From positions 1,281,962 through 1,345,961 of the forward strand of contig RHPI01000810.1 of the NCBI GenBank assembly GCA_009103225.1: 64,000 nucleotides of DNA, read 5' to 3'. The notes under the pieces are model-generated. The model had not been told where the DNA came from, ran no database searches, and saw only the letters and a list, made by a program, of their open reading frames with translations. Of the stretch, positions 4,901 through 64,000 are shown piece after piece (within the stretch, counting starts at the first letter, position 1; every line of letters starts with the position of its first letter). A program made the translations under genes and the position numbers. This DNA comes from Chlorokybus atmophyticus (taxonomy: Eukaryota; Plantae; Mesostigma and Chlorokybus algae).

Positions 4901-6013
4901 TATATATAATTATGAGACATCGGCATTGTTGTTTGCATGTATTCACAATCGCTCTTGTAACGCTCATGATGACGAGTTAAGCAGCACGCCCCGCACTTGT
5001 GCTTAATGAATGAGTGACACTCGGAGGTTAGATTGTCCATGCTGCAATGTTTTCAGTGCATAGTCACTCCCTGCTCCCGGTAAGATGCCTGGTTTTGCAC
5101 GCAATCTGCACGGTGGTTTGAACGCAATGCTGCAATGGATCACGCAAATAACTTATGATATGCTCTAAAGCACACGAATTGCTTGCTGTGACATGCATGG
5201 CGTGAGGCACCATCAGAGCTTGAAGCGTATGTCCTTGCAAAGACGATATTATGCGAGCGGTACTACTAACTTGGAGCTTTTACTCTCAACATTAGCAGCA
5301 AGTCAGATGCTCGTCTAAATACGTGTAGCAACGAGGTGTCTTCAAAAGTGGGTCCGCTTGCTTGGCCACATACAACGCTTCTTAAATTGCCTTCTTCCAT
5401 GCTTGGCGTTTGCTGTTGATGCAGAAGACGTACTCATTGGCGCGCTTGCACGTGCGGCCACCACAGATTTGTAATCAGAGCCTAACAGTTAATCAAGGTT
5501 TGATTGACCAACAGCTTAGCATGTAGCTGACCTCTGTTGTGGGCTTCGTTCCAACGTCCGTCCACCTGTATTCGATGTAGCTCTCTCTCTTTGGCTTAGT
5601 ACAAGTGCATTGCCTTAACAATCCTTGTTTACCTCATTGGTGTCTGGTTCAAACGGAGCCTAGCGCACAGCTATTGTTGTCGTCTGTGCATGTTGTTGTC
5701 CATTCTTCACTAACTTGCTAGACTAGCAAGCTAACTTGCTATACTAGCAAGCTCGCTAAACTACAACTTTTAAAGCGTCGCTTTGGCCTCCAAATTACTA
5801 CCATTGCAAGGATTGGTTTCATATGGTATCATTTGTGTGAATAGTTACATGAGCTTTCAATGTTGACACTATACTTGCATAAGTAGTGACAATGGATTCA
5901 TGTAATGCTACAACTCCTGTAGTGATACAATATTGATGTAATTCATGAGTGACTACGAATAATATTCAGCTCAAACCCGAACCAATATCTGATTGGCTAC
6001 TATGCAAAGGGGC

Positions 6014-7445
6014 AATCGTCGCAATATCTACACGGTGACTAACCAGGGACTGAGGACCGACGGGTGCCTGACCGTGCTTGACATGTCGCTTTTGGACTAT
6101 TGGGTTTGCCGTTGGCTATTATGGACTGTTGGTGACGGCCAATCGACGGTCGATAGTACACAAGCAACGGCGGCCTGCCTTTTGTGGCAAGCAGGTCGCC
6201 TTATAATGACTTGTGGTGCCGGCCGACTTTCGGTCGTCAACCAACCGTCGCATGTCATGCGCGGCAGCAACCTTTCAGCGACAAGCAAGTGATCGGCAGT
6301 TCCTACTTGTCGCTGCGTATTGCCGGCAAGTCGTGACTTTTATACGATGCATTTTGTGTACCATTAACATAATACGATGCTCTCATCGTAACAATAGCAC
6401 AATCGTACCATTTCAATAGTACGATTGTGCCATTAAAATGGTACGATCCCACCATGTTTTCGGCATCAATTTAAATACTCAATGGCTTAATTCAAGTTGA
6501 CACTTGACTCAAGTGACTTGTGAGCGTTGTGCAGGGGCTAGCAGCGCTGCAGCAGCGTCGGCGTCGGCGGCAATGGCGGCCGCGGCGATTACTGAATCAC
6601 ACCATGATGGCCAACAGTAGGTGAGCTTAGTTGCGGAATGTTATTATGTTGTGTTATGCGGAACAGCGCAGGCAGCCTAACCACCCTTTGTACCATAGGG
6701 CAGCCAGGCCACGCCACGCCAAGCGGCGGCGGCGGCGGTGGCGATACATGGCAAGCGACAGCATGTAGGTGTGTATGTTACTGTTGATTGCGCTTGTTTG
6801 ATTGCCTTAACCGCCTTGTGTGCTTTACAGGAGCGGCGGCGGACGAGGACCAGCGGCGGCGGAGTTGCCAGCTCTAATGGCGGGCGGTGCAAGAGCGGCA
6901 GCTTGGTACAGGGGTAGTAGTACTAGAAGTAGTAGCTTAGTTGTACTAGCAGTAGTAGTAGTAGTAGCTCAGTGGAGTTTACATTGCAGCATATAAACTT
7001 TTATTGGTATTATAAACTTATTATTTATCACCGTCTTGCACAGTTGACGACAATCATTGTGTGATGCATAATCATGACCAAGCGGTACTAACAGGTACTT
7101 ATAATGATACACAACAATAATGGCCGATACTATAAAGATACCATCAGGTACCTGTCAGGCACAACCATTTCACAGTCGCCGGTACCTAATTGTTAGATAC
7201 TGGTTGGTTACTTGTCAGTTAGGTTAAGACCCGTTTGCTTGGCTTATGGGTATTTAACAGGTACCTATCAGTTAAAGTCAGGCCCTTTCTGTAGACGTCC
7301 GCCAACTGATGTTGACGGCCGTTATGCTCAGGTCCCTGTATCGAGATTACCGGTGGACTAAGCCACGAGTCTCAATGAGTATCCTCAGGTGCACGGCCGT
7401 TGCCAATATTTAGTCGGCCGGCAGGGGAAACATTTTGCGACGATT
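6014..7445. mobile_element. Non-autonomous repeat element, copy 1 (short TIR CGTCGCAA/TTGCGACG)
   Basis: Ends AATCGTCGCAA (6014) and TTGCGACGATT (7435-7445). Colinear similarity to 12368-13884 at the left end (CACGGTGACTAAC..AGGGACTGAGG), the GGC-rich core and the right end (GTTATGCTCAGGTCCCTGTATCGAGAT...GGCAGGGGAAAC). No TSD found. Confidence 0.65.
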
Positions 7446-27800: not shown

Positions 27801-29542
27801 GTTGAACTAGTCATGCTTTGCAAGCACTACGACATGCAGACAACCATCACATGCATGCAGCACGTCATTGTACATTTGCGGATGTGAATCTCTTGCACCT
27901 TCCAGTATTGTAGCTAAGATGATTTGCATCTGGCTTGTGCAGTTGTGGATGGATCTAGCCAAAGTCAGCTTTGCAGTGTTTGCTACTGCTGAGTCTGGTT
28001 CTGAGGACGCCAAAAAGAAAGAAAAAGCAAAGGAGCGCCGCAAGATGGGCTCTCCGAATGGTGTGACCGATGGTGGTGATATCGTGCGCGCATCCCCAGT
28101 CATTGGTAAGTGTGCAGCTCACTCACGCAGAGTTGCTTGTTGGTGGGCTTGCGTGCGTGCATGTGTGCCCCTTTGTTGAGTTCCATGGTGCTGCTGCTGT
28201 GACCTTGGTGTGCGGTATGCTTGATCTGCAGCTACTTTTGATGCTATAAGCTCGCCTTATTGCATGTTTTGCAGCGTCAACTTCACCTATTACAATGGCC
28301 AAAGCAACAAAGAACGAAGCTGAGTTGGAAGGCATGCGAAAGGCGCATTTGCGCGATGCTGCTGCCCTAGCTAACTTTTGGGCATGGTTGGAGGCAGCTG
28401 TTACCAGTGGTGAACAACTCACTGAGGTTTGTAACCCTGCCGCGACGAATTGCTACAGCGCTTGCAATGGTGCATGCAAACACATTTGACCATTTGTCAA
28501 CAGTTTTCCGGGGTTGATGCCAGCCAGCTCAGCAGCATTTGAACAGGTGTACGTTGGTGAGCGCTTGGAACAGTTCAGGAGGGAGCAAGAAGGGTTCCTT
28601 GACACCTCATTTGACACCATAGCGGGGTCCGGACCAAATGGTGCAATCATTCACTACAGAGCAGAAGAAGGAACTTGCAGGATAGTGGATGACAAATTCC
28701 TGTTTTTGCTGGACAGCGGAGGGCAGTACACTGATGGTGAGCAATAGCTTGCTGACTAGTTGTGTGTTCTTATATGATTATGCTGGGCAGCAGAGAGAAC
28801 AACCATTGCAGCAGCCTCTAGCTTCAAATTGCTCGATTGTCTCACGCCTGGTGTCAGGCACAACTGATATCACACGGACGGCACATTTTGGCACTCCAAC
28901 GGACAGGGAGAAGGAGTGCTTCACGAGGGTGTTGCAGGGGCACATCGCGCTCGACAGTGCTGTTTTCCCTGAGCGGACTCCAGGGTTTGTTCTAGACGCC
29001 TTTGCGCGAGCTTCACTATGGAGCGCTGGCTTGGATTACCGCCATGGCACGGGGCATGGTGTTGGCGCAGCGCTCAATGTGCATGAAGGACCTCAGGTAC
29101 GATACATATCACTAGTAGAACAACTGCAGCAGCCAGCTCCGCATGCGGTATATGTGAATGCGTTTTGTGCGAAAACACACTCGTGTTGCTGCAGGGTATC
29201 AGTGCCAGGTATGGCAACCAAACGCCATTGGCAGCCGGGATGATCGTGAGCAATGAGCCCGGGTATTACGAGGACGGGGCGTTTGGCATCCGCATTGAGA
29301 ACTTGCTGGTGGTGAAGGAAGCCAACACGCCGAACCGCTTCGGCGGCACAACATACTTTGACTTTGAAAGGCTGACGTTCTGCCCAATCCAGACGAAGCT
29401 TTTGGCGCTAGAAATCATGTCGGAGTCTGAAGTTCAGTGGTTAAATGCCTATCACACGCAAGTGTGGGAAAAGGTTTCTCCGTTGATACAAGGTGACGCA
29501 CTCGAGTGGTTGCGGAGAAATACCCAGCCAGTTGCAAAATAG
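24819..29542 (+). CDS. APP2: Xaa-Pro aminopeptidase P (M24B) with an organellar transit peptide, multi-exon
   Basis: [28 protein letters not shown]...[94 protein letters not shown]; Ala/Arg-rich N-terminal extension. Start could be 24819 or 24834. Confidence 0.95.
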
Positions 29543-46813: not shown

Positions 46814-47029
46814 TAGGGGAGGCAATCTTATAACATATTCCGGCAGCGCTGCCAAGCAAGAGCACCCCGTTAAGTCCAACATCGTTAGAGCAGCACTCAT
46901 GGAAGGACTCGGGCAGCGCCGCCAAGCTGCCGCACCCACTCAGGTATAGCTCTTGAGGGGCAGCAAGCTTGTAAAACAAACCTGCAATGTTGCCAAGTTG
47001 TCGCACTCATTGTAATCTAGCTTTTGCAG
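46814..47029 (-). pseudogene. Relic of three plant-NLR-type 24-aa leucine-rich repeats, two frameshifts
   Basis: Across three frames: LQKLDYNECDNLATLQVCFTSL / QELYLSGCGSLAALPESF / ALTMLDLTGCSCLAALPEYVIRLPPL, fitting LxxLxLxxCxxLxxLPxx. Confidence 0.75.
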
Positions 47030-49433: not shown

Positions 49434-50560
49434 GTGGCCTCCCCGAAGATCGGCATCACATCGCTGGCAAAGGGGCGGCTGGAAGCGTATGGGTTGGACA
49501 ATGTCGTGTGCTCGCTGTCGCCCGACAACGGCGAGCTGGAGGCGGACTGCGTCCCCTTCCAGGCCGGGTCCTTCGTTGGCAAAATCGCCAATGGTGGACA
49601 CTCCTCTGTTTCCATCAGGTCTCCACTGGCTTCTTCACCCACAACACGACTACGTCTATGGCACCGGGAGAGGAGTACATCACCAACAACAGTTTTGCCC
49701 AACGCAACTCCCTGCCCGTCCTCTTCCGCTGCGCCTTCAAGAAGTCCACACTGCAGCAGCCGCCTTGCAAGGCTGTGCTCCCGGTTTGTGACCTTGTTGG
49801 TTACACTTTCACAACATGAACAACAATAAGCTGGTACACAGGTGACTGCTCGTGTCTTTGCGCGCGCACACATCCATGGCTGCATGGCTGCATGTATGTG
49901 GATGCTCCACGACTACTCTTCTTGTGCACAGGCGCGCACACGCAGGCACACGCTTACATGCACATGCCAATGTGCAGGCATATGGACAACAAATTGGAGG
50001 TCCCTGACAGGCCGCGGCTTGTTGGCGTCCCCAAAGCGGCCGGCGGTGTATGGGGACCACGTCGTGTGCGTGGTGGGCGACCGCTTGGCGACCAACAACC
50101 CGCGGAGAGCGGTGTACATCATCACCTGCAGAGGGGAGGACTTCACCTGCACACGCACACCAACATATCAACTTCCGGCACTTTCACCCAACCGCAACAC
50201 ATTCGGGGTCGTGAGTGAGGCACGCACGCATACATACACCTATATCTTGCTATCAAAACCCAAATTGAGTAAACAAACTAGAATTCATACACTGGTGTTG
50301 CACCAGCTGCCCCGGTAAAGCTCAGCGCATACGTCGCATCAATACGTCACAACCACAAACGATTGCCTGCTGGCAAGTTGCAGTCCAACAATGCTACTTG
50401 CTTTTGTTTGCTCACTTACACGTCCCCTGTGCTACTGTAGCCCACCCGCTCCGGGGTACGTGACGACAATGGGTGTATTGTTGTTCGCACTTGAATCGGT
50501 ATACGACGGTGGTCAGGCCTCGCACGTGCAGCTGACCGACTGCAAGTTAGACCAGACTAC
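49434..50560 (+). pseudogene. Fragment of an unidentified intron-containing gene, frameshifted near 49610 and apparently 5'-truncated
   Basis: Strong C/G third-position bias in frames KIGITSLAKGRLEAYGLDNVVC... and STGFFTHN...LFRCAFKK; tgtgcag|GC acceptor near 49977 with exon GIWTTNWRSLTGRG...YIITCRGEDFTC...TFGV|GTGAGT; further exon PPAPGYVTTMG. No family recognised. Confidence 0.4.
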
Positions 50561-50603
50561 CCCAATGCATCAGTGGTGTGGTTGTGCAAGGAGTTTGATT
50601 GTT

Positions 50604-51540
<937 letters not shown>

Positions 51541-52019
51541 ACTCATGCACGCATGCATGACTGAGCTAGCTGTCAGTCATGTTAGCACGGTTTGCTGTAG
51601 TGTAGCATTTTGAAATCAGTTATGCGCGCACGCAGGTAGCTTAAGTACACGCGCACAGCCACGATCACCAATGTCCGCATGCACGCAGCCACACACCTGT
51701 TCGCATTGCATGTCCGCATGTACATGCGCACACAGAGAGACACACAGTGACGCACGCATCCTAGTATATGCTCAGGTTTTGAGTATGAGCACATCATGTC
51801 AACTCATATGCTGTATACTGCTCTCACACATTAAAACATACACATACATGCAGACTCAAGTGGACACATATGCAGGCACGCAACTTCAGCGTCAAACTAC
51901 TACAAGCGTGCAATCTCCATAATTTACAAAGCTTATTTGTAAAGCTTAAATACAAAGTCCCTTTCATCTCTTGACAAGGTGGAGTACACCCTGTCAAGGC
52001 GAGAGGAAGGCACCGCAAC

Positions 52020-53841
52020 TCATGCATTCTCTTCGATGGCATTCATCTCGTCCAATGCGTGTTGTGTTGAGGACGGTGCATCCGTTTTGTTATGTTTCTC
52101 ATACTGCAGCTCCAGGAACGTGTAGTAATCTGGCCGATTGTCCGCCTCAAGGTAATGTCGATTGCCAACAGGCCACTGCTTCCACAGCTCGAGCCGATAG
52201 TAGTTGGCAATGTCAATCGGCTCCACCATGAGTCGAAAAGTGTTGCCTCTCGCACACCAGACATTGGACTTGCTAAAAAAGTCAGCAGGCAACATGCCAT
52301 CCATGTGCCATTTGTAAGCTGTACGCCAGAAGTCCCGTACAACCCTATCAAGTTGGTGGAAAGGTCATATCAGTACTGATGAAGCTTTCAGTTGCACTGA
52401 GCTTGAAACTGCGATGCATGTCGTCTGACCTGCGTGCGCGCTCAACCTTTTTCAAGCGCTGTTCTTGCGGGCTGTCATCATCACCACGATACGTTCTGAA
52501 CTCGGCGTAGGAGTCCGCAGAGGTCCTCACAAAGGCTTGTATCGTATCCATGGCGTCTTGTACATCATTGCGCCACTGGTTGGTAAACTCTGTTTCATTT
52601 CTGCGCTGCTCGGCGACACTCAACACGCCCACTCTCGGTGAGTCCGCAGCGCTGCAAAGGTGAACGCACTTGAACTACGCATGTCATGTGGTAGGTCAAC
52701 AGGTCCACACTGCACGTTAGATGCCAATCAGGCCGCAATGCAAACCTATGTGGCATGGGCATGGGCTGCACGAAGGCCGGAACACTTCCCAAGTGCTTGA
52801 CGAGGGTGTCGTACCCAACCCAGGGATCCTATTGCATAAAGATAGGAACAGAAGACCACGAGTTACTGATGCAGAGATTGTGACATACCATGAAATACCA
52901 TTCTGACTGGATGCATGCTGCAAGCTCTTTCTTGTTCATCAAGAAGTGGGCACAGCTTGGAGCGAACGCACCACACTCTTTGAACTTGCCTGCTGATCGC
53001 CAAGGGTAAAGTAGCTAAATTTCCGGATCTGCGCAGGTACATGCTTTCTTGCTCCCGGGGGCCGGAAGATGACTGGTACCAACCACCCGGAAAGGTTCTG
53101 CTCCTCATAAACCTTGTTCAATACATTCGTGTACTCGTCGTGCGTCCCGGCCCCCATTTGATCATCTGCGGTGGGCTGCTTCAATGAAAACCGCTCATAA
53201 TGCTCATCACAGGCCACGATCACCTGAAGCATCATAAGACGAGATGAAAGCCTAAGCATGCAATGCTGTAATGCAGATGTGCCTGCTTACTATAGGGAAT
53301 TGTTGAATGTGAAAAGCTGGGAGTGTTGATGACAGCAACCATGCGCAAGGTTTACTATTGGGAATGATATGACAACCGGTACCTTTGTGCCATCGTTCAA
53401 CATCTGCCCAATAAAAGCCGGCCAGGACTGGTATGTATTTTTGTAGTCCACAATGACTTCGATATTGTGTTGTTGCAGTTGCTCGGCAAGCCTCCGCACA
53501 CGCTCTGCGTGTTGGTTGTCAAACTGGCAGTAGCTGATAAACACTGTCAACTTGGGTGCCGCAGACAGTGCCCCTGTAGCCTCTCGTCCCTGTCCGCTAT
53601 GTGCACGGCACACGCAAAACAAAATAAGCAAGGTGCATTTGCCGCAACAATTTAATGCATGCTTGCTCAAAAACCTGCATTGAACTTACGCAATAGCAGC
53701 GTGATTGACAGCGGCTGATTTCTTAAGGTGTTGAGCACTACCATGGTTGAGATATGTGTGGTTCCAGTAGCCAGCGCCAGTGACAATGGATGCAGCCGCA
53801 GCCAGCACTGCAGGCAGCCTCAGAGATACCAGTCCGCCCAT
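52020..53841 (-). CDS. 419-aa protein: hydrophobic N-terminal anchor + SEFIR-type TIR domain + EDS1/PAD4/SAG101-type EP domain (exons 53841-53690, 53596-53383, 53223-52990, 52828-52716, 52651-52430, 52344-52020)
   Basis: Exons total 1260 nt with matching phases and no internal stop; four GT-AG introns and one GC-AG. SEFIR/TIR: PKLTVFISYCQFDNQHAERVRRLAEQLQQHNIEVIVDY...WPAFIGQML..VIVACDEHY..GAGTHDEY..LVPVIF..VP..GYDTLVKHLG..P. EP: SYAEFR...KKVERARRVVRDFWRTAYKWHMDGMLPADFFSKSNVWCARGNTFRLMVEPIDIANYYR...RHYLEADNRPDYY, compared with recalled PAD4 LAKFWDTVIKMVETNELPFDF...LAEPLDIANFYK...GHYLEGNRPKRY. The ATG could lie further upstream. Confidence 0.85.
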
Positions 53842-54820
53842 CTCAAGACGCTTCTGCTTCTCCTAGTAAGCCAAGAGCGGTGCAGGCCAACGCATGGGCA
53901 GCAGCGAGCTCAGCTCCTGTTCAAGTTCAGCATTGGCCATGTCCAAACCACCAAGTGCTGTACAACTGTACAGCTGTAGAAGACCAAACGAAAGGGGTGG
54001 GGGGGTGGGGGGGGGGGTCACCAAGTGCTGTCAGCTGAGATGATTACGACAAAATGCACTATACATCTCTTCATCAGTTCCGACAACTTGCACTACAGCA
54101 AATGCATTGAAGTACGAAGGCATTGCTGTTACTGCAGCCAGTAAGACCCCGATGCCATTGACAACGACTTCACCTACTTGAATACTACAGCATGCTTGCC
54201 CTAAGTTAGAAACGCTGCTGCACACAGGAGGTATACTACTGGCTGGCTGCAAGAAGCACATGTTCATAGAATGTTGGAAGATGTGCGTCTGTCTGTGCGC
54301 GCGCCAGAGTGTGTGCATGCATGCGTCTGTCTACGCACACAGACGCACAGGCGCTCATCAGCATGTGCGGGGTACCTACACTGCTGATGCACAGACTGTG
54401 AAGTTCGTTGAGTTAGAGAAGCTTTCTGGAGGACCGGTTAAGCAGCAAAAGGGGCAACACGAGGGGAAGTAGTCCGTGGGGACACACAACGAAGCGGCGA
54501 GCTCACAAAGCCGTTAGCAATGGCGAGGCATTGCAGCGCACCTGGGCAAGCAGGCCGAACCCTAAGCAGTGCTTGCAGGATTTGTCGCCATGTACATCAG
54601 GGACACTGCGCCGTTGGCGTTTGCTAACCAGCGCCTCCCAGCATGGCGCTGACGTACGAAGCTGGCGCCTGCTGCGCTTTCTCACCCACCCCTCCCGGAA
54701 AGTCCCTTCCAGCCGGGCGGCGGACACCGCCGACACCGCCGTCTCCGACCGCCTCGCACTCCGTGCCAAAGTACACAACACGAGACAACTTTGCTCTGAA
54801 CGTGCATCTCTACTGTGCTA

Positions 54821-61255: not shown

Positions 61256-64000
61256 TCGTCAAGTTATCTGCAACTGCAGTTCCACTGGATGCCGCGGCAT
61301 GGTAAGCAGTGCGGTCTATGAGTTATGCAATCTATTGCTCTGACCAAAAGTCTCATAGGCACTGTCCAGTGTCTACGAGTCATGCACTCCATTGCTCTGA
61401 CCTAAAGTCTCATAGGCACTGTCCAGTGTCTACGACTTATGCATTCCTTTGCTGAGACCTAAGGACTCATAGGCACTGGACAGTGCTAGTCTGGTCTATG
61501 ACACAGCCATGCACGCGTGTGTCTTGCTTGTGATTCTTGATAGCGTGGTGATGTGGATTGGTGTTGATCGCTGGCGTGCTAACCAAAATTTGTCATCATA
61601 GATGGTGGACGAAGCAGTTGCAAGGGCGCACCGTGCACTTGACCTGGCAGTTGCCGCAAGCAGGTGGGCACCACCTATTCCCCATAGTCAACCTCTCGAG
61701 CCCAGCCAACCACCATCAGAGTCTGCTACGAAGAAGTGGCTGGATATCTACCTAAAGATTGTGACAGCCCTGGAAGATTCTAGTGTCCAGGTTGCTCTCG
61801 TCAACGAGATTATGAAACTCATCTTTGGCCAGATAAATTCTGTGGTCAAGCTGGCCTTGGAGGTTCCTTTTGAACAGGAGCAGTTGCGGGATGACATCGC
61901 CAGCCTCATAGGCGACACAATATCGCACAGCCCTGTCGCGGATGAGCTGCCGACAGACATTGCCGCCGTGGATAAACTGTTGGCCGCGCTCGGCATGCCT
62001 GTTCCTCAGCGCCTGACCGTCTGTCCCACATGCAAGTACTTGTTTGATGCACCTTATCCCACACTCAATGAAGATGACGAAGACTCGGACACGAGCGAGA
62101 CCAAGCAAAAAATGATTGATCGCCTTCGCAACACACCGTGCGGAGGGGGATGCGGCAGGGTTCGCAAAGAATGTTGCGACTTCTTGTACAATCGTGTAGG
62201 TGCCTGGCTCAGCGCCAAATTAGCTGTCCCTTCAATCGCTCACGACTATTTGGAGGAATGGCGCCACAAAAATGAGTGGTTGCACGTCCCTGTGGAACAA
62301 GTACCTGCTGCAAACACTGAGTACTGGCATGGTGCGAAGAAGCAGCATCACTGCAGCTTCTGGGACCCTCGCCACAAAATCAAGCTGCCTGTGTCCTGCG
62401 CATTCTGCCACCACATCCCGGATGTCGATTTGGAGCATCACAACGCAGGCGATCACGTGACATTTGAATGCTCAGGGTGCCACAAAACCAACCATCAGAT
62501 GGTACAGCAAGCTCTTGGCGACCCTCGCAACATAGCCCTGCTAATCCACGCCGACGGCTTCAGCTCAACAACCACTGTGAAGCACAGCTGCACCGTTGTC
62601 AGTGCCTCTGTGCTCAATGGCGGGAAGCGCATTTCCTCACAAGAGTCTTCCGTCATGCCTTTGCTCTTTGTTCCCACTGATCAGCTCCCAAACGGTGTGG
62701 ACAGTCTGGAGCCCTTTCTGGAACCACTGGTGCGTGACCTGGAGAACCTCTACTTGAACGGCTTCACTGTTCGTTATGGCCTCGATTCCAATCATGTCGA
62801 CAGCCGCGTGCTTGATCGACGACCAGGTAATGACTGGGTTATAACATGTTTTGTCACCTATATCACCCCAAGTCTCATAGGCACTGTCCAGAGTCTACAA
62901 CTTATGCAGTCCATTTTTGTGTATGCTAAAGTCTCATAGGCACTGTTCAGTGGCTGCGACTTGGTTATAGCATATCTGCCTTCTTGCGGTCTATGAGACT
63001 GTCATAGGCTGCACTGCCCAGTGCGGCCTATTACAGTCTCTATCAGACTGGTTGTGAGATACTGATGTTGACTTCATTGCAGGTCAAGAGATAACGCTGC
63101 GGGTAGTGCTGTGGGCATGGACGGGTGACCAGCCAGCGCAATGTGAGATAGGCCAGTTTAAGAATGGAGGCCTCGTCCCCTGCCGGCGTTGTCTCCTCAA
63201 AGCCACTCAGCACCAAGTGCCCCGGCGTGCTGAGCAGGGTGAAGATACTACGAGGACACGTACAGACCATTTTTATGGTGACAATCGCTATTACTGCCGC
63301 CATCCCCCAGCAGAGAGAGCAGCAAAGGATGCGTTCGACAACGCGTGCATGGTGGACTCACTCGATGGCCAAAACCGGAAAGAAAAATCAATGGAGTGCG
63401 GCATCACAGGGAAATCTCCACTCTGGCGGCTGTGGCATCTGTATGAGTTTAACCCTTGCCGTGACTTGGTCTATGACACGATGCACCTGTTGCTGGAGGG
63501 GCTTTGCAAAAGTTTCGTGCACAGTACGCTGGGTGCAGACAGTTCAAAGCATGTCGAAGACATTGCCAAGGTGGAGCGCAGGCTGTCTCAGATGCGCATA
63601 TCACGCCCCATGGACTTGAAGAGCAAACGTTTCCCAAGAGGCATCAGCAAGCACCTGGCTTGGTTCAAGGCCCAGGACTTGCAGATGTTCGTGCAGTATG
63701 CTGTGCCATACGCTGTGTCCGATCTGGTAGACGAAGCAACCAGAGACGTCAGCTTTGCGCTTCACTTGCTCATCCGCATCTTCTTCCACAACTCTCGCCT
63801 ACATGGCTGGACTGCGGAGCTGTTGGAACTTGCTGACGCTCTTTTGAAATATTGGAGGGTCTACTCGGAGGACCTGTTTGGCACCAACAAAAGGCCCAAC
63901 GAGCATGTGGCCGGTGCCGGTCACATTCTGGAGGACATCATCTGGCACGGGAGTCATGATGTGTACTGGTGTTTTGTGCAAGAGCGCACTGTGTCCAACT
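60695..64000 (+). CDS. CMC/EnSpm (CACTA-like) DDE transposase, spliced, open to the window edge
   Basis: Large exon 61602-62826 with VCPTC and DPRNIALLIHADGF...VMPLLFVP..DSLEPFLEPLVRDLENLYLNGF (Transposase_21-like). Exon 63083-64000 is stop-free: TLRVVLWAWTGDQPA, PCRRC, YDTMHLLLEG, FKAQDLQMF, GSHDVYWCFVQERT (DUF4218-like). The D-D-E candidates are all present. The 5' exons (60695 onward) are tentative. Confidence 0.88.
61314..61490 (+). repeat. Three ~57-bp tandem units (core AGTCTCATAGGCACTGTCCAG) in a transposase intron; same motif at 62870-63010
   Basis: CTCATAGGCACTG occurs at about 61352, 61409 and 61466, and again at about 62874 and 62934. Confidence 0.85.

Follow-up and report, generated by a model that had tools for sequence, protein, structure and literature searches.

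A transcribed gene of the alga Chlorokybus atmophyticus encodes a SEFIR domain followed by an EP core

Introduction

Does an early-branching streptophyte alga encode a TIR-type domain and the EP domain of the EDS1 family in one polypeptide, and what would such a protein do? The question is raised by a minus-strand locus (53841-52020) in a stretch of 64,000 nucleotides of Chlorokybus atmophyticus DNA, hereafter referred to as the window. A first-pass annotation made from the letters of the window had proposed six phase-compatible exons that place a SEFIR domain ahead of an EP domain, a glutamate at the site of the TIR catalytic Glu, and a functional coupling of TIR and EP older than EDS1 of seed plants. 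In EDS1, the pocket arises where two EP domains meet, with lipase-like domains keeping them together. In green algae, only 'short EP-like sequences' are recognized, robust EP homology being confined to seed plants (bioRxiv 10.64898/2026.05.20.726525).

The searchable library yielded no publication naming both SEFIR and EDS1, and the 2026 atlas of eukaryotic TIR and SEFIR domains mentions neither EDS1 nor Chlorokybus. In the searchable literature that names both Chlorokybus and EDS1, the SEFIR-EP architecture has apparently not been described. The first-pass remark that no description of this architecture was known therefore holds for the searchable literature, but not for databases, where the Pfam matches to SEFIR, TIR_2 and EDS1_EP are already present in the precomputed annotation of the protein.

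Results

Gene structure and transcript support

The gene comprises six coding exons and is intact, spliced and transcribed. To place its transcripts, we used three RNA runs of one organism (X1, X2 and X3), which contain about half of the words sampled from the window. The RNA contigs were placed at 90% identity, which gave five joints in the coding region along with joints of diverged paralogs, and then at 99% identity. The resulting features are as follows.

54541..54754, minus strand: 5′UTR exon, joined to 53915 by X1 and X2 contigs, with a loose-end sequence equal to 54545-54574; 54754 is the minimum reach upstream, not a defined end
53916..54540, minus strand: 5′UTR intron, GT-AG, ~625 nt; joint ~53915>54541 in X1 and X2
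53690..53915, minus strand: exon 1, coding from 53841 to 53690 with the ATG at 53841-53839; N-terminal hydrophobic segment (aa 2-24, ~53838-53770), then linker
53383..53596, minus strand: exon 2, first half of SEFIR (strand A with FISY, helix A, strand B with D101, helix B)
52990..53223, minus strand: exon 3, SEFIR strand C, helix C with E152, strands D and E; GC donor at its end
52829..52989, minus strand: intron 3, GC-AG, 161 nt; joint in X1 and X2 at 99% identity (raw joint 52827>52989 with three ambiguous letters, resolved to 52828>52990)
52746..52828, minus strand: exon 4, final SEFIR helix (DPWVGYDTLVKHL), then Pro-rich linker
52430..52651, minus strand: exon 5, first EP-core helices, the EP core starting at ~52620
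52020..52344, minus strand: exon 6, EP core with EPIDIANYYR and HYLEADNRPDYY; stop codon 52022-52020
51848..52019, minus strand: 3′UTR, at least 172 nt, as judged from a contig of 326 nt (51848-52173) present in X1 and X2

The coding exons are phase compatible and form a single open frame of 1230 nt (409 codons plus stop) with SEFIR ahead of EP, just as had been proposed. All five coding joints (53596>53690, 53223>53383, 52828>52990, 52651>52746 and 52344>52430) were found in X1, X2 and X3 contigs at 99% identity; the contigs placed at this threshold carried zero mismatches, and the depth inside the introns was zero. Four of the coding introns are GT-AG, while the third is GC-AG and not GT-AG. 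A single contig runs from the 5′UTR exon through exons 1 and 2 into the beginning of exon 3, and a second one spans exons 4 to 6; the rest of exon 3 and its joint to exon 4 are tiled by contigs that overlap one another. It is strongly implied that the SEFIR and EP exons reside on the same transcript molecule, the basis being overlapping short contigs and not one long read. The continuity across all five introns is thus supported by RNA through tiling, with no single read spanning them. The joints in exact-match contigs and the open frame clearly speak for one transcribed gene, and not for separate genes, an untranscribed locus or a frameshifted one.

The product corresponds to C. atmophyticus jgi/Chlat1/626, Chrsp103S01043 (hereafter P0001), which was retrieved by an HMMER search of 1.84 billion representatives with the last exon, over which the identity is 100%. 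P0001 is annotated as 415 aa vs. 409 aa for the RNA-supported product, the only difference being six residues, ASSKSV. The 18 additional nucleotides of the annotation at exon 3 (52972-52989) have zero RNA depth and no joint, and the same six residues are absent from the paralog P0083. The annotated GT donor lying 18 nt downstream of the GC donor at 52989 was rejected, as neither a joint nor depth was found for it in RNA. Another rejected candidate was an alternative exon in the FKECG... frame (52985-52889), which is out of frame and also has an RNA depth of zero. A longer N-terminus contributed by upstream exons was ruled out as well, because an in-frame TAG (53865-53863) is located 24 nt upstream of the ATG.

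The product is arranged as an N-terminal anchor, a linker of ~40 aa, the SEFIR domain (aa 66-226), a short Pro-rich linker and an EP core of 170 aa. The N-terminal segment is weakly hydrophobic, with a Kyte-Doolittle 19-residue maximum of 1.73 at aa 2-20 vs. 2.0-2.5 in the TM-EP relatives described below. The N-terminus itself, MGGLVS, is what we take to be a possible N-myristoylation site.

Several other features of the window were recorded. The 5′UTR intron, which like the non-coding exon preceding it falls beyond the interval of the first-pass annotation, contains a G-rich run (~53995-54019). Directly 3′ of the gene, there is a (CT)n/(GA)n microsatellite of ~1 kb (50557-51550); it ends at an N (51540), which may represent an assembly gap. 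An ORF of 445 aa (61602-62936) shows a sub-threshold match to Transposase_21 (tnp2/CACTA-type; 23 bits vs. a cutoff of 28.6), and an ORF at 28689-29240 with a Peptidase_M24 match (1.7e-18) probably represents a single exon of a gene of the methionine-aminopeptidase or prolidase type.

SEFIR domain

Exon 2 by itself matches both Pfam TIR_2 and Pfam SEFIR. The SEFIR match (PF08357, STIR clan) reaches 41 bits at a cutoff of 23 (3e-10; aa 68-200 against profile positions 2-143 of 150), and TIR_2 on the full annotated protein exceeds its gathering score with 37.7 bits (3.3e-9). The PADLOC bSEFIR model (PDLC03957) gave 74 bits with a match spanning aa 63-367, while tblastn against plasmids returned bacterial SEFIR proteins with 25-32% identity. 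A word-based homologue search with the SEFIR part found nothing beyond the paralogs. Pairwise alignment with a Deinococcus bSEFIR protein extends from aa 69 to ~226-272 and puts E152 on the Glu of a GGVGTE motif; the helix DPWVGYDTLVKHL encoded by exon 4 is also alignable with bacterial bSEFIR.

The span of the PADLOC match prompted us to consider the C-terminal domain of bSEFIR proteins as an EP homologue. This was rejected: three bSEFIR proteins gave no EDS1_EP match at E≤1, hhalign gave a probability of 0.6%, and BLASTP similarity stopped at ~aa 226-272. The bSEFIR proteins thus differ from the algal one in having their own C-terminal domain of ~300 aa that is unrelated to EP. On the plasmids (loci L002-L008), the bacterial SEFIR genes adjoin integrases, IS elements and AimR, Abi and DUF262 genes, which is a typical mobile or defence-island context.

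We aligned 50 SEFIR domains, 48 of them prokaryotic (bacterial or archaeal, from 80 loci collected) and two from the full-length algal proteins. Twelve positions are invariant in all 50: F70, S72, Y73, L91, D101, V123, Y131, G148, E152, Y161, P185 and P232. The glutamate of GAGTHDEY to which the first-pass annotation had drawn attention is E152 (codon 53136-53134), one of these invariant positions; it is also kept in all six paralogs. Human Act1 has Lys in this column, within GLHTKY. A profile built from the 50-sequence alignment detected BcSEFIR (5y8e) at 8.5e-49 and human Act1 at 3.8e-5.

An AlphaFold model of the SEFIR domain based on the same alignment (pTM 0.70) has the expected strand-helix order and a five-strand flavodoxin-like fold. 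Helix C is predicted at aa 150-164 with E152 in its first turn; the pLDDT of E152 and the preceding loop is below 50. In a Foldseek search with this model of moderate confidence, the top match was 5y8e (E 1.8e-5, TM 0.66), followed by Act1/IL-17R SEFIR domains and bacterial TIRs. Judged by its sequence, the domain is of the prokaryotic type: it is 22-32% identical to prokaryotic SEFIRs (bSEFIR PDLC03957, BcSEFIR 5y8e), shares their invariant residues, including GxxxE, and has one of them as its top fold match. What distinguishes it from them is a eukaryotic, intron-containing gene and a product that is probably membrane-tethered. Act1/TRAF3IP2 and the IL-17 receptors belong to the same domain family, and the Act1-like helix-C motif GxHxxY and strand-D segment are found in the algal protein; Act1 differs in its partner domains and in having Lys instead of the Glu common to the algal protein and all 48 aligned prokaryotic SEFIRs.

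E152 is thus the Glu conserved among prokaryotic SEFIRs, and it lies where a TIR-like catalytic Glu would be expected, the match being positional only. The model, of low confidence at this site, puts E152 at the beginning of helix C, and residue-level equivalence to a catalytic Glu such as SARM1 E642 or RPS4 E88 does not follow from the alignments to TIR NADases, since the hhalign/HMM alignments to AbTIR, the SPARTA TIR and the canonical TIR of paralog P0004 end before helix C.

EP core

The C-terminal part of the protein matches Pfam EDS1_EP (PF18117) with 39.6 bits at a cutoff of 23.1 (5.8e-10; aa 298-402 against profile positions 27-122 of 211), and exon 6 by itself gives 1.5e-9 with this profile. 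A phmmer search of PDB sequences paired aa 301-386 with residues 346-425 of AtPAD4, and aa 314-399 with residues 462-541 of OsEDS1. The EP core shares with AtPAD4 and OsEDS1 the motifs EP(L/I)DIANYY and HYL..(N/G)RP, a signature that links it to the EDS1/PAD4/SAG101 proteins.

The AF2 model of the EP core is of high confidence, with pLDDT 88-98 from aa 241 and 95-98 across ~243-415. VIA-align comparisons of model residues 245-415 gave the following best matches.

OsEDS1 (8zf0_B), residues 396-560: Z 19.7, rmsd 1.5 Å, 157 residues, 24% identity
AtEDS1 (7xjp_A), residues 362-560: Z 18.9, rmsd 2.3 Å, 157 residues, 19% identity
AtPAD4 (7xdd_A), residues 294-464: Z 17.6, rmsd 1.4 Å, 150 residues, 27% identity

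The EDS1/PAD4 scores far exceed those of the next unrelated rows. As modelled, the EP core superposes on that part of the EP domains of EDS1 and PAD4 which forms the ligand pocket; the comparison with EDS1/PAD4/SAG101 as a whole points to a common helical fold over the nucleotide-pocket region, with Z 16-20, rmsd 1.4-2.3 Å and 19-27% identity.

There are also differences. The C-terminal 60-90 residues of seed-plant EP domains are missing from the algal EP core: in alignment A6, the algal EP ends ~90 columns before the plant EP C-terminus, and the structural match ends at EDS1 residue 560 of 623. A positive charge at EDS1 R493 is needed for TNL immunity, R493 and K478 being basic residues of the cavity (PMC6377607). 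In the algal protein, the R493 column is occupied by Y381, the equivalent of H476 is Leu, and the K478 column is ambiguous, with K363 as a possible counterpart owing to an insertion. The R493 column holds Tyr in five of the six aligned members of the SEFIR-EP family and Gln in the sixth (P0004). The plant members have Arg there, as do several of the algal TM-EP proteins that stand alone. The Pfam scan found no Lipase_3 or hydrolase match in P0001, while the plant proteins P0072 and P0080 have Lipase_3. Instead of the lipase-like alpha/beta-hydrolase, it is SEFIR and an N-terminal anchor that precede the EP core. The protein holds an EP core but is not a member of the EDS1 family, because it is without a lipase-like domain, lacks the EP C-terminus and has Tyr as the R493 equivalent. 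With the EP truncated and Tyr at the R493 position, binding of TIR-made nucleotides is therefore not implied.

Paralogs and the wider EP-core family

The search with the EP exon gave 82 matches, mainly short proteins or fragments, which typically consist of an N-terminal hydrophobic helix followed by an EP core. Among the 45 longer matches that were scanned, EDS1_EP was found in 44, TIR_2 in four and SEFIR in three, and among the EP-exon matches, the combination of EP with SEFIR or TIR was confined to Chlorokybus. One match, P0025, a 1599-aa bacterial PKD/cellulose-binding protein, was discarded as a spurious repeat match and not an EP relative. The Chlorokybus paralogs carrying such combinations are listed here.

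P0083: same architecture as P0001, 82% identity, both full-length
P0084 and P0002: N-terminally truncated models
P0003: LRR, partial SEFIR, EP
P0004: TM, EP, canonical TIR, SEFIR remnant, EP

Some of these paralogs are, in their predicted gene models, without SEFIR strands D and E. At least one diverged SEFIR-EP paralog is transcribed, as X1-X3 also contained contigs with 10-22 differences and matching splice joints. The scaffold of P0001 (Chrsp103) further encodes P0013 (Chlat1/627), a stand-alone TM-EP protein with the adjoining protein id. Such proteins resemble P0001 in having an N-terminal hydrophobic helix and then the same short EP core, aligned throughout, and differ from it in being without SEFIR; several of them have Arg at the EDS1 R493 position, unlike the SEFIR-EP proteins.

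The gene of P0001 is thus a member of a small Chlorokybus family where the EP core follows SEFIR, TIR, LRR-SEFIR or just a membrane helix. Going by the paralogous gene models, the link between STIR-clan domains and EP appears to recur, the EP core being joined to SEFIR, to a canonical TIR and to LRR-SEFIR. Within the window, the LRR part of P0003 has a weak tblastn match (46902-47003, E ~3e-4), which is located ~5 kb from the gene on its 3′ side and possibly represents an LRR gene or what is left of one. In another genome (GCA_030012885.1, JASCQV010002970.1, locus L001), an EP-only ORF (P0023) was found ~4 kb from an opposite-strand TIR ORF (1469-1972 and 6001-6732), possibly a second case of a TIR-EP neighbourhood outside seed plants.

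Discussion

In this work, we provided evidence that a transcribed Chlorokybus gene encodes SEFIR and an EP core in one chain. The fusion is undescribed in the searchable literature and is not unique to the locus 53841-52020; its function is something that we infer. The reading we favour, to which we give about an even chance, is that of a membrane-tethered immune-type signalling protein. The N-terminal anchor, common to P0001 and the stand-alone TM-EP proteins, would tether the protein to the membrane as a component of an innate-immunity or cell-death type pathway, where SEFIR would self-associate with other SEFIR/TIR modules. Once assembled, SEFIR would probably cleave NAD+ by means of E152, and the EP core in cis may serve as an output or regulatory module that binds a partner or a small molecule. 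According to secondary sources, bacterial SEFIR cleaves NAD+ to ADPR and nicotinamide, and cleavage by the algal domain is probable because both E152 and D101, invariant in prokaryotic SEFIRs, are kept. Speaking against this reading are the pLDDT below 50 around E152, the end of the TIR NADase alignments ahead of helix C, the shortened EP core with Tyr at the R493 position, the weak hydrophobicity of the anchor (1.73) and the absence of lipase-like domains that could build an EDS1-type pocket.

SEFIR could also act without enzymatic activity, docking homotypically as in Act1/IL-17R and recruiting the protein to receptor types of the LRR-SEFIR-EP kind encoded by the same genome, with EP as an interaction output. 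We hold such an adaptor role to be a possibility, albeit a somewhat unlikely one. It is favoured by the occurrence of the SEFIR-EP module in both small and receptor-like proteins and by the resemblance of the helix-C motif GxHxxY to GLHTKY of Act1. In the preprint by Millman, moreover, the D40A substitution at a predicted SEFIR-SEFIR contact of a bacterial SEFIR, the sole mutant given there, abolishes defence, and D101, invariant in the same strand-B region, is a candidate counterpart of this residue. However, the presence of E152 in all six paralogs and in the 48 prokaryotic SEFIRs, where Act1 has Lys, looks enzyme-like, as expected for a conserved acidic residue. A yet different view is that the fusion reflects lineage-specific domain shuffling with no functional TIR-EP link, the EP core having a role apart from nucleotide signalling, e.g., as a membrane-associated helical scaffold, and the SEFIR, TIR and LRR fusions being by-products of a rapidly duplicating family. 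This we consider improbable. Shuffling would fit the prevalence of short TM-EP proteins among the EP-core matches outside seed plants (EDS1_EP in 44 of 45, TIR_2 in only four), the restriction of SEFIR/TIR fusions to Chlorokybus among the EP-exon matches, the several paralog models devoid of SEFIR strands D and E, and the lack of conservation of R493-type basic residues. It does not readily account for an EP core combined with SEFIR as well as with canonical TIR, which are distinct STIR-clan domains, for an EP-only ORF ~4 kb from a TIR ORF in another genome, for the retention of the entire architecture by two full-length paralogs with 82% identity, or for the expression of the gene.

As for an artefact, i.e., two neighbouring genes merged by the annotation or a decaying untranslated copy, the annotated model does contain one wrong donor site, and the continuity was established from tiled short contigs and not a single read. 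Nevertheless, every junction is present in exact-match RNA contigs, including those over exons 4-5-6 and from the 5′UTR to exon 3, the introns have no RNA depth, no stop interrupts the frame and none of the conserved residues is lost, which makes an artefact hardly credible.

The most far-reaching proposal is that of an ancestral cis-coupled module, where a STIR-clan NAD+-cleaving domain would make a nucleotide signal sensed by the adjacent EP core, and from which EDS1 of seed plants would be derived; the SEFIR-EP and TIR-EP proteins of Chlorokybus would be survivors of it. The EDS1 family would then have arisen by the movement of the EP core onto a lipase-like scaffold, with generator and receptor becoming separated. 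We regard this scenario as unlikely. The first-pass notion of a generator plus receptor in one chain may apply, but the absence of an R493-type residue, the shortened EP and the lack of a lipase-driven heterodimer of the kind that builds the EDS1 pocket all weaken it. The coupling of TIR and EP before the seed-plant EDS1 node, which the same annotation had suggested, would presuppose a common descent of function.

The significance of the finding is that the EP domain, treated as a hallmark of seed-plant EDS1, is here found in an expressed gene of an early-branching streptophyte together with SEFIR. A STIR domain that, by its conserved residues, probably cleaves NAD+ and an EP core predicted to be well folded are combined in one compact chain. 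The locus thereby makes an ancient cooperation of TIR-type and EP domains, long before seed plants, testable, and is relevant to TIR signalling in lineages without EDS1, hence its high interest for the evolution of plant immunity.
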